Source: Calcarisporiella thermophila CBS 279.70
Lineage: Eukaryota > Fungi > Calcarisporiellomycota
Assembly: GCF_041956535.1 (NCBI RefSeq)
Contig: NW_027192209.1
Coordinates: 511,408 to 575,407 of the forward strand
DNA: 64,000 nucleotides
Direction of reading: 5' to 3'
Shown one piece after another: positions 43,156 to 48,557 of the stretch. A program made the position numbers and the translations under genes. The stretch's first letter is position 1. Each line of letters starts with the position of its first letter. Below the pieces are notes generated by a model. The model searched no databases. It saw nothing but the letters and a program-made list of their open reading frames with translations, and had not been told where the DNA came from.

Positions 43156-43431
43156 CTACTCCTCGTCGATGTTCTGGTTAAGGGACCCGGAGTCAGTGTT
43201 AGAGTTGAGGTTGTTGTTCTGGTTATTAGAACCAATCTAGGGAGAAATAAAAATTGTATCAGCTCGTCTCTCAAGTAATGATTTTTTTTGGCTAGGCTTT
43301 ATAATGCTCACCTGTTGGCTACCACCCACGGTATTATCTTTACCGATTTTAATGTCGCGACGATCGAATGCGTCGTTGTTAGCAGCGACGAGAGCAGTCA
43401 AAGCAAGGATGCAAAGGAGAGAAAACTTCAT
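43156..43431 (-). CDS. 66-aa secreted pre-pro-peptide with Kex2 site and N/Q-rich mature peptide
   Basis: Exon 1 43431-43312, intron GTGAGC...GCTGAT...CCCTAG 43311-43237, exon 2 43236-43156: MKFSLLCILALTALVAA-NNDAFDRR-DIKIGKDNTVGGSQQ/IGSNNQNNNLNSNTDSGSLNQNIDEE*. Confidence 0.85.
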
Positions 43432-43531
43432 ATTTACTGTTCAAGGATTGGATTGAGTATTATTAGAAGGGATGGAGCGAGAGAAGAATTATTGATGAAG
43501 AAACTGTCAGAACGGATATAAGATTAGAGGG

Positions 43532-43539
43532 TTTATATA
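43532..43539 (-). promoter_or_regulatory. TATA box of the peptide gene
   Basis: TATATAAA on the minus strand about 100 bp upstream of the ATG, followed by a pyrimidine-rich leader. Confidence 0.6.
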
Positions 43540-45084
43540 GACAATTTTCTCAGGGTGGCAAATTCAGCAAAATTATAACTGTTTTTAGTCACTACAATTA
43601 TAGTAGGTACCGAGAGTTTCATTTGCCCCTTTCACGACATCGGGCCAAATCTCCAAGACAATGCCCTGCTTGCGGCTCACACGCGAGGGTATTCATTTGC
43701 CTAGCGCGTTCCGACCTGATTCGACCAAAACCTGACTGTACTACCTAAAATATTCTTCCGAGGAAGCGTTTTTCTCAAAAAGCAAAGATAGACACTGGAA
43801 CGCTATGTGCCCGTACTCATTTCCATCGTAAGAGGTTACGGCAAAGATATTGTACTTGGGCTCCTAGTCTATTATTTTATAGGGCCTACACGAATTCTTC
43901 TAGATGGAGATTGGTAATCAACTTTTAACTACATATATACATATGCACATAACTATACTTTATAAATATAGATGTACATCATGAAACCAGTCTGTTAAGT
44001 TAGTAATACATATGAACCGAGCACACTTCGAAAACGGAGAAAGAAGGCTAGCGGCAAAGATATAGCGCAAGAGGTCTTATTTCTAATTCTATTATAATCA
44101 ATAAATTCTATTTGATAAGCGGCTTAGAGGGTATCCCTGCAAAAGAGTTTCGGCATAAGATTTTGACTACGAATCCCACTATTGGAGTTGATACAAGCAA
44201 ATCTAAACCATATTTAGGCAATATTCCTAGATTGAATACGAGATTATTGATAAACTGTGAGCTTCAGAACATTTCCATGGCGCATAATAACTTGTTTCCA
44301 AATTCTTGCTGATTTCAGAGCATCTTGTCTGCTACACGTTCAGATTATCTAATAATGAGAGCAGATTTTTCCCAAAGTTCAATTGACTCTATTCAAAGCT
44401 CTAGGTAGCATTCTTGCGGTTAGGTGTCTCTTCGAGTCATCGCCATCAAGACACAGGCTACGGTTGGCAAATCTCTTCTGCCGCAGCCCAAAATACCCTT
44501 AAGCACAGCCTATTCTACGCGTAAAGTTAGTGCAGGTAGATTTCAATGTGTATAGCTCGTTCAAATTATAGGATTACTGATGCTGGGTGTCATAAAAAAT
44601 GAAGGATAAAACTAGTTGCATGTTAATCTGAATATGGTGATTTTGGGACGCAGCATAGTGTAAGTGATCGCATGGAAATCAGGATGTGCTTGTAGAGTTG
44701 TCTGGGAGCATCCAATCGCGAATAAGCCAATCTAGTTAACTTTTTTATAGTGCACGTGCTATAATATCTTCAGGAAAGCAGTCTCAATGCGCTAGTTCGA
44801 TCGGCTCAAGTGATCATTTTCCTATTTTGACCAACATAGAAAGTAATTAAAAAAAAGTATCAGTGCGCTGTCTATCAATGTCCTCCGCACACTCTTTTAT
44901 TATCTCTTTATCCCTTCCCCTCCTCCTCATTCCTTCATTCAATCCTTTGCTTCGCATAATATTTGTCATCCCGCATTCACATTCATCTCGCACTTTTCTC
45001 CGTAATCTCAATTAGTCACATACCTTCATTTTCATATTTGTGTTCTCCAACTTTCAATTCCATCAATTCTCATTTTCACATAAC

Positions 45085-47266
45085 ATGCATTTCGGTGGTT
45101 TTCTAGTTTTTTTCTTTTTTCCTACTGCAATAGCCTACTACGATCCTCTAAAAACCTACTATGCCATAGAGCTATCCCCAGAAACTTCCCCTTCTTACGT
45201 GTCGAGCGCGTTTGGCGTAGAATGGGAGGGTCCGGTTGGCCAACTCCCACATCACCACTTGTTTAGCACCCGAGGTTCCCACCATAGCGGACTTGAAGAA
45301 TGGAATGGTGCACGATGGATGGAGCGACAAATTCCGCGTTGGCGAGCTAAGCGAGGAGTGATCAGAAATAGCGAAAGAAGTGTGTGTGTTGCAGGGTCGG
45401 TGTGTTCGAGCGAAATGGCCGACGGGCGGCAGTGGCATCTTCGTAATACCGAACAACTTGGCCACGACCTGAATGTGACGGAGGTGTGGAGGCAAGGGGT
45501 GACAGGGCGAGGCGTTATTGTGGCTGTGATAGATGACGGCATCGATATGGAGAATGAGGATCTGCGCAGCAATTATTATGCAGAGGGCTCGTACGATTTC
45601 AATACCCATACGGCAACCCCGCGGCCAAGGGGTCCTGCTGACACCCATGGAACAAGGTGCGCGGGGGAAATTGCAGCCGCAAGGAATGATATGTGCGGTG
45701 TGGGGGTCGCTTACGAAGCAAAGATATCCGGTGAATATTTTTCAACGCTAAACTAAGATTATCCTGTTTTCAATGAATATTTATCAAGCTAACATAAAAA
45801 CCATCCGTTTTACACAATAGGGATAAGAATGCTCTCTGGGGCGATTATTGACGCCGATGAGGCTGCGGCACTTACTCACGCTTACCATGACAACGCCATA
45901 TACACCTGCAGTTGGGGTCCCCCCGATGATGGTGAAACGCTTGAAGCACCCTCTCCCCTTATCCAGCGCGCGTTGGAGCATGGGACGCAGCACGGTCGCC
46001 ACGGCAAGGGGAGCATCTATGTGTTTGCGTCGGGAAATGGCGGGTGGGAGGATAATTGCAATTTCGATGGGTATGCGAACAGTATCTATACAATGACGAT
46101 TGGCGCGATCGATCGTTGGGACAATTTCCCGGCGTACGCAGAACGCTGTGCGGCATTAATTGGGGTGACTTATAGTAGCGGAAATGAAAGCTTTATTGTG
46201 AGTATCGAAGAATGCAATTCGGCCAATTCATGGATCATTTAAATTAACAAGGATCTATTTGCCCCTATCAAAAAAGACAACGACCGATGTGGGAACAGCA
46301 GGTTGCACGGAGCATCATGGCGGAACTTCCGCAGCTGCCCCACTTGCCGCCGGAATCTTTGCCCTAGTCTTGTCAATACGGCCTGATCTCAGTTGGCGCG
46401 ATGTCCAGCGCCTGGCCATTGAGAATGCCGTTCCGTTTGCTCTCGAGGACCCCGATTGGCAGCCCACAGCGGCCAAGAGGATGTTCAACCACAAATTTGG
46501 ATATGGAAAAATGGATGCATTTCGCATGGTTGAAGCTGCTCGCAATTTTAAACGCGTAGGAAAACATGCTAGGTGGGAAATCCCGGAAAAAGTCGTGTCC
46601 AAACCCGTACCGCGTTCTTCGAAGACGGGACTAACCTCCTCGGTGCATGTAGAGAGGGAGGAGGGGGTCTCCAGCGCAGTATCCAGGATTGGATACGTTG
46701 AACATGTATCCGTCACACTGACCCTTGAGCACCCGCGGCGAGGGGACGTAGAGGTTTTGCTTATAAGTCCTTCAGGGATTGTGTCGCAGCTCGCGACTCC
46801 GCGAAAGTACGATTCCAGTTCGGAAGGCTTCACGGATTGGACGTTCACAAGCGTCAAGCACTGGTAAATAGCGCAGTAGTCTAAGTATGGCACCGGATGT
46901 ACTGAAGCTTCTATTGTTGGCTTTTCTAGGGATGAGAGCCCATATGGCACTTGGGCGCTTCGTATTTTGGACCATGGGAGGAATGGGGCGCTCCCTGAGG
47001 GCCGGCTGGTTACATGGAGACTCACCTTCTACGGAGAAGAGTATCCTAGAGTGAATGAGGGCGAAGATTGGCCAGGCTCGCGCCTTGGAGGTGAAAGGAA
47101 AGTGCTGGAGAGAGTTGAGAGTGCAAGCGAAAGGGCCGTGTCATGGCGATACGTACTTTTGGTTATGATGGGATGCGTGATGTGTAGTGGAGCGTTGGTA
47201 TTAAAGCGGATATGGATGCGGCGTCAGTCGGATATGATTGCCTTGAGCGAAAATTTTAAACAATGA
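45085..47266 (+). CDS. KEX2: Kexin/Kex2-like subtilisin proprotein convertase (4 exons)
   Basis: Signal peptide, prodomain ending RWRAKR, catalytic D (IDDG), H (HGTRCAGE), N (SGNGG), S (GGTSAAAP), P-domain (VEHV..HPRRGD), TM and 20-aa tail. Confidence 0.93.
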
Positions 47267-47362
47267 AATACCCCTTCTTAGTGTTGATCCAATTCAGACA
47301 TTAGTTGTTTATTTTTTGCCACCTATTTTATCTCCTAAAACTGTAGCAAAATAAAGCCGAGA

Positions 47363-48557
47363 ATGGACATTGGGCTCCAGTGCGATGTCAAAACTTGCCA
47401 GCAACTAGACTTTCTTCCGTTTCAATGTCCCCTGTGTGATCACTCCTATTGGTAATCATCCGTCTGCAGCCTCTAAGGCATGCGTCTAAATATGGTGGAG
47501 AGTTTAGCTTAGATCATCGATTTCCATTGTCCCATTCGTGTCCCAATTGGGAGGGGAGGAAAGCTCTGGTGTGCGAGCGATGCAATGGTCTTGTCGTGGG
47601 AGAAGAGAATATTCACAAACTTGTATGTAGATCACATTTGAGAATGTTGCCCAAGAGTTTGAGCGTAGTAATGAGAATTTCATACATTAGCTAGAAGAGC
47701 ATAAGTCTTCGGGCTGTAAATCCAATCTTTTCGCGTCACAAAAGCAGGCTACCTCCGAATGTCATGTCAATGGATGCGGGCCCATTGCTCTCAAGAAAGG
47801 GGTCGTCTGTTCTGGGTGCGGGGAAACATTCTGTTTAAAGTAATTCTATGTGATGTTCCTCTTTATCTTCACTCACAAAAAGACTTTACACACCGTCCAT
47901 TCTATTAGACATCGCCACGTTTCTAGTCATGCTTGCCCTTCGCTCCACATGCTCTCCGCTCAAAAGCATCTCCGTCGTGAGGCGGCCCTTGCTGCTACCT
48001 CATCTCTCGTGGATGCTTCTGCCAACAAGGAGAGGAAAACATGGACGCCAAAGAAGGCTGGGTCAAAGACATCCCGCATGGTGGAGCTGATGCGAATTAA
48101 GTCGCGGGCTGAAGGTGATAAATCTGTGCCGTTGTCATCGAGAGTTTATGTCAGTGTGGAATTTCCAAAGGAATGTGGGCTTGCCGCTAAGCCTATGTTT
48201 TTTGATAAGGTATTTTTGAGCAAAGTAAGCCGAAGATTTGGTCAGCAGAGTTTAAGGAGATCTGGTTTCATATAGACCTGGAGCCTGGGGAGGGTGTTGG
48301 ACCGAATCTCGCAAATAGCCAACGTTTCTAACTCCAACAATCAACTGGGTGCAACGGACCTTCAGGTAAGAGACATGAGCGTAAGCTCTGATTTCCTTTG
48401 CTTAGGAACGAGTGTTTATTTTTGGTTGATATTATCGATGAGATAGAGGCTTGTGGTGTTAGTGGATGGCGAGCAGGCTGCAAATGATTCGAAAATCGAC
48501 GAGGTCGAAAATGGGGCGACTCTCAAGGTCGAGCGGCTCTCGGCTCTCCAGGAATAA
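47363..48557 (+). CDS. AN1-type zinc finger protein (ZFAND1/Cuz1-like)
   Basis: IGLQCDVKTCQQLDFLPFQCPLCDHSYC/LDHR..HSC; second AN1 finger CSGCGETFCLK/HRH..HAC; C-terminal ubiquitin-like part KPMFFDK/TWSLGRVLD. Confidence 0.9.

Follow-up and report, generated by a model that had tools for sequence, protein, structure and literature searches.

The window analysed here, a 64,000-nucleotide stretch (positions 511408-575407) of contig 19 in the 28.2 Mb assembly of the fungus Calcarisporiella thermophila, carries a gene for a protein of 66 amino acids, VTP21DRAFT_4036, head-to-head with a gene for a kexin, VTP21DRAFT_4037. Our results suggest, with fair confidence, that VTP21DRAFT_4036 is the smallest member of a family of kexin-type pre-pro-proteins known only from C. 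thermophila, and that an atypical kexin adjoins it most simply by coincidence. The simplest explanation for the adjacency would be chance, in a genome that is unusually rich in both kexins and kexin-type precursors. A co-regulated, dedicated pair, as proposed in a first-pass annotation of this DNA, is possible but unsupported.

The family of kexin-type pre-pro-proteins, about 17 genes in size, has not been described before. Most fungi have one or two kexins, and the precursors that these enzymes process are scattered through the genome. C. thermophila has six kexins in two species-specific clades. Together with the module family and its shared promoter motif, they form a defined set of enzymes and substrates for asking which kexin cuts what. 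If a precursor with its own convertase were proven outside a cluster for peptides that are ribosomally synthesised and then modified post-translationally (RiPPs), convertase duplication could be tied to particular substrates.

A family of modules behind a predicted kexin site

The joined exons of the small gene (Table 1) match the public protein VTP21DRAFT_4036 (P0001, 66 amino acids, "uncharacterized protein") letter for letter, and this was the one protein returned by a word search with exon 1. Signal cleavage is predicted at VAA|NN, which leaves the pro-piece NNDAFDRR (residues 18-25), and a predicted cut after RR25 would give a 41-amino-acid peptide, DIKIGK...DEE. The G+C content of the exons is 0.46, compared with 0.35 in the intron and flanks. 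At third codon positions it reaches 0.74 in exon 2, and over the whole gene AAC and AAT are used in a ratio of 10:2. Splicing rebuilds the family motif QQ-IGS-NN, which is unbroken in the intronless paralogs C26 and C28. This indirect sequence evidence gives good reason to regard VTP21DRAFT_4036 as a real coding gene. Its intron lies three codons (9 nt) 5' of the position common to the other spliced paralogs (QQ|IGS versus QQIAE|), with the same phase and the same total module length; either the intron has slid or the splice pair was made anew.

The first paralog appeared as a weak six-frame genome match to exon 1 on contig 26. It is an intronless open reading frame (ORF) of 223 amino acids that consists of a signal peptide, APNKR, AIGIGGNNSVGGHQQIAENNINNSNNSGPGAGSLNQNI and then PPVTVT repeats. 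It shares 51% identity with P0001 over residues 3-63 (E 8.5e-10) and reads through the P0001 splice point. The family was gathered by iterated genome searches and then with a 47-column profile of 13 modules, which yielded 36 matches at the level of exons, grouped into about 17 gene loci. These lie on contigs 26, 28, 38, 18, 10, 12, 20, 19 (VTP21DRAFT_4036), 42 (two), 7 (three within 12 kb), 11, 14, 39, 41 and perhaps 36. For ten of the members there are annotated entries among the public proteins, and their splice pattern agrees with the pattern derived here. VTP21DRAFT_4036 is the shortest of these genes, which together hold at least 20 modules.

All members share one layout, in which a signal peptide is followed by a variable pro-piece closing in Arg and a conserved module of about 40 amino acids, rich in Gly, Asn and Gln. 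The module consensus is x-I-x-I-G-G-x-N-x-V-G-G-x-Q-Q-I-A-E-N-N-I-N-N-S-N-N-S-G-x-G-x-G-S-L-N-Q-N-I. Before the Arg, neither length nor content is conserved, and conservation sets in at the very next residue. In most members the module is followed by Pro/Thr/Cys-rich repeats that resemble those of wall proteins. The paralog on contig 12 has four tandem modules, preceded by VVIER, GLNFKR, VEEKKR and EPKNKR, and ends in ...LLEEEEK*, akin to ...NIDEE* of VTP21DRAFT_4036. Judged from these sequences, the module would be an N-terminal head that is freed by removal of the pro-piece, and in two genes it would make up the whole product.

The RR of VTP21DRAFT_4036 is very probably a kexin-type cleavage site. 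In the alignments, the residue before the predicted cut (P1) is Arg in 20 of 20 modules. Position P2 is occupied by K in 11 modules, R in 2, E in 4, Q in 1 and P in 2, so that 13 of the 20 sites are dibasic, and RR|D of the window stands at the position shared by all paralogs. Leu, Ile or Val is found at P4 in 14 of 20 modules, including nearly all with non-dibasic sites. These sites fit the Kex2 rule of KR, RR or LxxR that has been described for fungal pro-domain effectors (bioRxiv 10.1101/2020.05.27.120113). Kexin cleavage is well supported as a prediction, because the Arg is invariant and mostly stands within KR, RR or LxxR, and because the four modules of the contig-12 paralog lie between ER and KR sites. 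Hence, the first-pass description of a two-exon gene with a signal peptide, the pro-segment NNDAFDRR and a 41-amino-acid mature part stands, and its reading as a Kex2-type precursor is well supported: RR lies at the boundary, with its Arg invariant across the paralogous modules, those of the four-module polyprotein included. A kexin would cut after the Arg in the late secretory pathway and free the N-terminus of the module. The product of VTP21DRAFT_4036 would be the 41-amino-acid peptide, either secreted or joined to the wall.

An alternative explanation might be that the conserved Arg belongs to the module as a structural residue, that the short N-terminal piece is retained on the secreted proteins, and that kexins are not involved. 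We consider this unlikely, even though some evidence counts in its favour and against cleavage by a kexin. Seven of the 20 sites are not dibasic (ER, QR, PR), and Glu, Gln or Pro at P2 is poor for canonical Kex2; moreover, the pro-pieces of some members are very short, at 5-8 amino acids. However, most of these non-dibasic sites comply with the LxxR rule through their Leu, Ile or Val at P4, and the abrupt onset of conservation right after the Arg is not what a structural residue within the module would suggest. In the contig-12 gene, furthermore, the Arg closes every variable spacer (GLNFKR, VEEKKR, EPKNKR), as in Kex2-processed repeat proteins. The possibility that the 66-amino-acid gene is an annotation artefact, or the dead fragment of a longer family gene, seems very remote by comparison. 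Its product is indeed very short, is predicted to be disordered, and lacks the Pro/Thr-rich tail of most paralogs. Yet, the frame is intact from the signal peptide through the site to the end of the module, and both the contrast in G+C content between exons and intron and the strong preference for C-ending codons indicate coding sequence. A TATA box and three GGCAAAT words are retained in its promoter. Just past its last module, the contig-12 paralog ends in an acidic tail as well, and module-only products therefore appear to be usual among these genes.

As a monomer, the mature peptide is probably disordered, because the AlphaFold2 model of P0001, built with the family alignment, shows no fold past the signal-peptide helix (mean predicted local distance difference test score, pLDDT, of 61), and because the ESM Atlas model has a pLDDT of 0.35. 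Structural neighbours of P0001 in the ESM Atlas were dismissed as relatives, as all had template modelling (TM) scores below 0.45 and are meaningless.

In public data, the family is confined to this species. A search with the module profile against 1.84 billion representative proteins gave 11 matches at E <=0.001, ten of which came from C. thermophila. The eleventh, P0130, is a protein of 1,202 amino acids from a Joint Genome Institute (JGI) metagenome, resembling a tail fibre, with ten NGDNVVSSSQQI repeats that are similar to the first half of the module only. P0130 is an unrelated repeat protein whose likeness is probably convergent, although it hints that the half-module may be a beta-strand repeat. 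Pfam, searched at E up to 1, held no family for the module, and resemblances to Curlin repeats and to PIR proteins that had been seen by eye were not confirmed by Pfam.

Several features of VTP21DRAFT_4036 and its paralogs recall the Kex2-processed pro-domain (K2PP) proteins and the Kex2-processed repeat proteins (KEPs) of other fungi, which share the signal peptide and the pro-piece closing in KR, RR or LxxR right before the mature part (PMC6339444; PMC7329392; bioRxiv 10.1101/2020.05.27.120113). The K2PP feature, a pro-piece that closes in a Kex2-type site, is present in VTP21DRAFT_4036 as NNDAFDRR|D. KEPs carry several core peptides between KR or RR sites. In this respect VTP21DRAFT_4036 differs, with one module and one RR, whereas the contig-12 paralog is alike, with four repeats after ER, KR, KR and KR. 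In contrast to both classes, the module described here can also head larger wall-like proteins and, in one case, an enzyme; every module is interrupted by an intron of its own, and no relative is found outside the species. KEPs are common in fungi, their families being as a rule lineage-specific, and Mucoromycota have 9.15 of them per strain on average (PMC7329392). Because C. thermophila branches as the sister of all other Mucoromycotina (PMC10079182), no close genome is available for a comparison of synteny. The highest number of Kex2-processed repeat proteins reported for a fungus, 43, is that of Basidiobolus meristosporus (PMC7329392), and at least four distinct kexins of this species were among our search matches. 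C. thermophila combines six kexins with numerous precursors of this type, and kexin copy number possibly tracks precursor load.

With regard to function, the module can be compared with two better known systems. Rep1 of Ustilago maydis is matured by Kex2 into secreted units of 35-55 amino acids, and the PIR wall proteins of yeast have a pro-piece that Kex2 removes before Gln-containing repeats. Both are analogies: no sequence similarity to the module was detected in either, and an amyloid or wall-linking role of the module would be suggested by analogy only.

An atypical, species-specific kexin

The first-pass annotation had described a complete kexin gene, head-to-head with the peptide gene at a distance of about 1.65 kb, with no other gene in between. 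This is borne out by our analysis. VTP21DRAFT_4037 has 648 codons in four exons on the plus strand, with an intact active site and a P domain. The spacer of 1,653 bp contains no ORF longer than 66 amino acids and no Rfam match, and the two locus tags are consecutive. Pfam assigns Peptidase_S8 (PF00082) to exons 1-3 and P_proprotein (PF01483) to exon 3 (3e-17; 76 bits across exons 3-4 in the genome search), and the best solved relatives of the exons are yeast Kex2 and then furin.

VTP21DRAFT_4037 is an active-looking but atypical kexin, as judged from its predicted protein. It begins with MHFGGFLVFFFFPTAIA..., followed by YYAIEL...WEGPVG...RWRAKR|G before QWHL, which indicates a signal peptide and a prodomain with a dibasic autoprocessing site. 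The catalytic motifs VIDDG, HGTRCAGE, SGNGG and GGTSAAAP are all present, and the S1 residues are retained in PPDDG, DNCNFDG and YAERC. Hence, it shares with yeast Kex2 and other fungal kexins (MEROPS S8B; PDB 1OT5, 1R64, 2ID4) the prodomain end RAKR, the Asp, His, Asn and Ser residues, an acidic S1 subsite, the P domain and a single transmembrane helix. It differs from them, as from its five paralogs, in three respects. The S2 motif reads PADTHGTRC, with Ala at the position of Kex2 Asp210. This is unique among the 16 kexins compared, as the others have (L)xDDxHGTRC or ED at this site; three residues before it, VTP21DRAFT_4037 has Gly instead of the Leu of other kexins. The Ser/Thr-rich stalk is absent, which leaves about 35 amino acids between the P domain and the transmembrane helix. 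The tail of 20 amino acids, KRIWMRRQSDMIALSENFKQ, lacks YEF, whereas the tails of three paralogs (P0045, P0005 and P0004) bear xYEF.

Counting the kexins of the genome and placing them in a tree had been suggested in the first-pass annotation as a check on the pair. Six P-domain loci were found, namely two convergent pairs on contigs 5 and 7, one on contig 17, and VTP21DRAFT_4037 with the lowest score. The main tree, calculated from the catalytic and P-domain region with exon 4 omitted from the alignment, places VTP21DRAFT_4037 as sister to the contig-17 paralog P0045, with a Shimodaira-Hasegawa-like approximate likelihood ratio test (SH-aLRT) support of 96; a tree of exon 3 alone agrees. A second clade (SH-aLRT 97) unites the four remaining paralogs, and foreign sequences fall in neither. 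The end branch of VTP21DRAFT_4037 measures 0.88, compared with a median of 0.26, and is the longest of the six Calcarisporiella kexins. A profile of the VTP21DRAFT_4037 exons and P0045 found no sequence outside the species above ordinary kexin level (about 800 bits versus 1,194 for the gene itself). According to the tree and this profile search, VTP21DRAFT_4037 is a species-specific, fast-evolving paralog and not a single housekeeping Kex2.

The public model of this kexin, P0132 (VTP21DRAFT_4037, 917 amino acids), is longer than the gene described here. Through a predicted intron at 47198-47356, it leaves the kexin within the transmembrane helix and continues into a downstream ZFAND1-like gene. 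The latter is complete, starts from an ATG of its own at 47363 and encodes two AN1 fingers and a UBL_ZFAND1 domain (47198-48300 region). In P0132, two gene models have probably been merged, as opposed to a real fusion of a kexin with ZFAND1, and a probable merged model in the public annotation is herewith flagged.

Shared promoters and the question of a dedicated pair

Genes of the module family appear to be regulated in common, by way of a promoter type that combines GGCAAAT with a TATA box. GGCAAA occurs at -90 to -300 in 15 of 16 family promoters, compared with 21 of 79 background windows (p 4e-8), and a TATA box is present at -65 to -160 in most of the family. In 8 kb of family promoter, the word GGCAAATT was counted 10 times, versus 1,354 times in the 28.16 Mb genome, a 26-fold higher density. 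The genome-wide count of 1,354 itself compares with 397 for the reversed control word. Because GGCAAATT is over-represented throughout the genome, it is possibly the site of a common transcription factor and not special to the module family. Among the other kexins, the family promoter word is found at -237 in one and at -31 in another.

It is against this background that the adjacency has to be weighed. VTP21DRAFT_4037 might be a convertase reserved for this peptide or for its family, with both genes of the pair controlled from the spacer of 1.65 kb. We judge this improbable, to much the same degree as a structural role of the Arg, and the proposal of a co-regulated substrate and dedicated convertase is not supported by our results. 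The other family genes, about 16 with the same type of site, are located elsewhere, on other contigs or at a distance of 470 kb from the nearest kexin. Conversely, none of the other five kexins has a module-family neighbour: no family gene is close to the sister kexin on contig 17, and the family trio on contig 7 is 470 kb away from the contig-7 kexins. The promoter motif sits by the peptide gene, where the TATA box and the promoter words lie within 270 bp of its ATG and more than 1.3 kb from that of the kexin. One GGCAAATC word does occur 619 nt upstream of the kexin ATG, but a lone GGCAAA in the 800 bp upstream of the kexin is at background level. The genes are indeed head-to-head with none between them, yet a spacer of 1.65 kb is long for a genome in which the next gene begins 96 bp past the kexin stop. 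Codon usage differs sharply, the AAC:AAT ratio being 10:2 for the peptide gene but 3:18 for the kexin, an indication that the two are expressed at very different levels. Tailoring genes were not found near the pair. A genome search for UstYa/DUF3328 (PF11807) gave no match either, which is a weak negative, since the control genomes likewise gave none.

Coincidence nevertheless has several points against it. The chance expectation of a family gene adjoining a kexin is about 0.013, or roughly 0.05 if all Kex2-type precursors reported from this genome are counted, and pure chance is therefore not a comfortable explanation. For the lower figure, some 8 positions next to the six kexins were taken as open to a non-kexin neighbour, the family was set at about 17 genes, and a random order of at least 10,800 genes was assumed; both figures have to be read in the light of a pairing hypothesis that was formed after the pair had been seen. 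Furthermore, the neighbour is precisely the atypical, fast-evolving copy, without stalk and without YEF, that would be expected of a specialised convertase, and its Ala in place of the S2 residue Asp210 could match the unusual P2 residues of the family (R, E, Q, P). A published cluster also combines a precursor with a second kexin. In Epichloe festucae, gigA of the gigA-gigB-gigC-kexB cluster is co-expressed with the second kexin kexB, which is needed for one of its products (PMC10540207). The pair described here resembles this cluster in layout only, as a precursor next to a non-housekeeping kexin, which in Epichloe is partly specific for that precursor. The Epichloe cluster is backed by co-expression and knock-outs, and includes a DUF3328/UstYa protein and a methyltransferase that lead to a cyclic RiPP, whereas our pair stands among housekeeping neighbours.

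A more elaborate scenario combines these points. In an early-diverging fungus that bears an exceptional number of Kex2-type precursors, the kexin would have multiplied to six copies, and one fast copy would have lost its Golgi-retrieval tail and the acidic residue of S2 and come to serve the module family, or this peptide alone, as a private convertase. The result would be a precursor-plus-convertase module of a non-RiPP type, with a 41-amino-acid product that acts at the surface or in the wall in a repellent-like manner. Such a history is, in our view, slightly less probable again than a dedicated pair as such. Coincidental adjacency of a family member and a divergent kexin remains the reading that we prefer.

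Locus layout and further observations

Table 1. Features of the VTP21DRAFT_4036/VTP21DRAFT_4037 locus, with positions counted from the first nucleotide of the window.
Feature	Position	Strand	Remarks
Peptide gene exon 2	43156..43236	-	IGSNNQNNNLNSNTDSGSLNQNIDEE, then stop; second half of module, acidic end DEE; aligns with paralogous B-halves
Peptide gene intron, 75 nt	43237..43311	-	GTGAGC...CTGAT branch-like site...TAG; G+C content 0.35
Peptide gene exon 1	43312..43431	-	MKFSLLCILALTALVAANNDAFDRRDIKIGKDNTVGGSQQ; signal peptide (amino acids 1-17), pro-piece NNDAFDRR, first 15 amino acids of module; P0001 residues 1-40; aligns with 12 paralogous A-halves
Arg24-Arg25 codons, predicted kexin cleavage site (P2-P1)	43357..43362	-	P1 Arg invariant across family modules
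Spacer between start codons	43432..45084		1,653 bp; single-copy in genome
TATA box TATATAAA	43532..43539	-	about 105 nt upstream of peptide gene ATG
GGCAAAT, three copies	43557-43564; 43621-43627; 43695-43701	+; -; -	family promoter word
GGCAAATC	44466-44473		619 nt upstream of kexin ATG; single further copy in spacer
Kexin exon 1	45085..45730	+	signal peptide; prodomain ending RAKR (45343-45354); catalytic Asp (45532-45534) and His (45646-45648); Ala for Kex2 Asp210 (45637-45639)
Kexin exon 2	45821..46197	+	S1 acidic residues; oxyanion Asn (46036-46038)
Kexin exon 3	46277..46863	+	catalytic Ser (46328-46330); first half of P domain
Kexin exon 4	46930..47266	+	end of P domain, short linker, transmembrane helix (47150-47203), 20-amino-acid tail, stop

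The neighbours of the pair encode MDM31/32, arginase, serine hydroxymethyltransferase (SHMT), the ZFAND1-like protein, a PQ-loop protein and a cytochrome P450. Around the sister kexin VTP21DRAFT_3337 on contig 17, a divergent ORF of 135 amino acids lies about 1.9 kb upstream (L057:226-630, minus strand). It has a signal-peptide-like start and ends in ...KFKRSSCEFEFE. This ORF occurs once in the genome, matches no Pfam entry and bears no relation to the module family.

Many of the family genes are found near the end of a contig, at a distance of up to about 100 kb, or on a small contig (12, 11, 20, 7, 36, 38, 39, 41 and 42), while VTP21DRAFT_4036 is internal. Close to the end of contig 7, the genes 10796, 10800 and 10801 cluster within 12 kb. 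One of them, VTP21DRAFT_10800 (P0126; L037/L059; at about 1.228 Mb), encodes a protein in which the module heads a secreted poly-gamma-glutamate hydrolase domain, Gamma_PGA_hydro (PF05908, 1.5e-42).

In the four-module gene on contig 12 (L019:1377-2278, minus strand, at about 33.7-34.6 kb), all modules are interrupted at the same point by an intron of their own, which implies that module and intron were duplicated together. This gene has no counterpart protein among the profile matches, and may be unannotated or differently modelled in the public set. Finally, contig 19 itself holds a further Kex2-type precursor about 157 kb upstream of the pair (352500-357000). It is a large secreted Gln/Asn-rich protein that ends in acidic repeats of about 40 amino acids (…DDLNSDDPFADVVIDENEF…GTTQFKR), closing in FKR.

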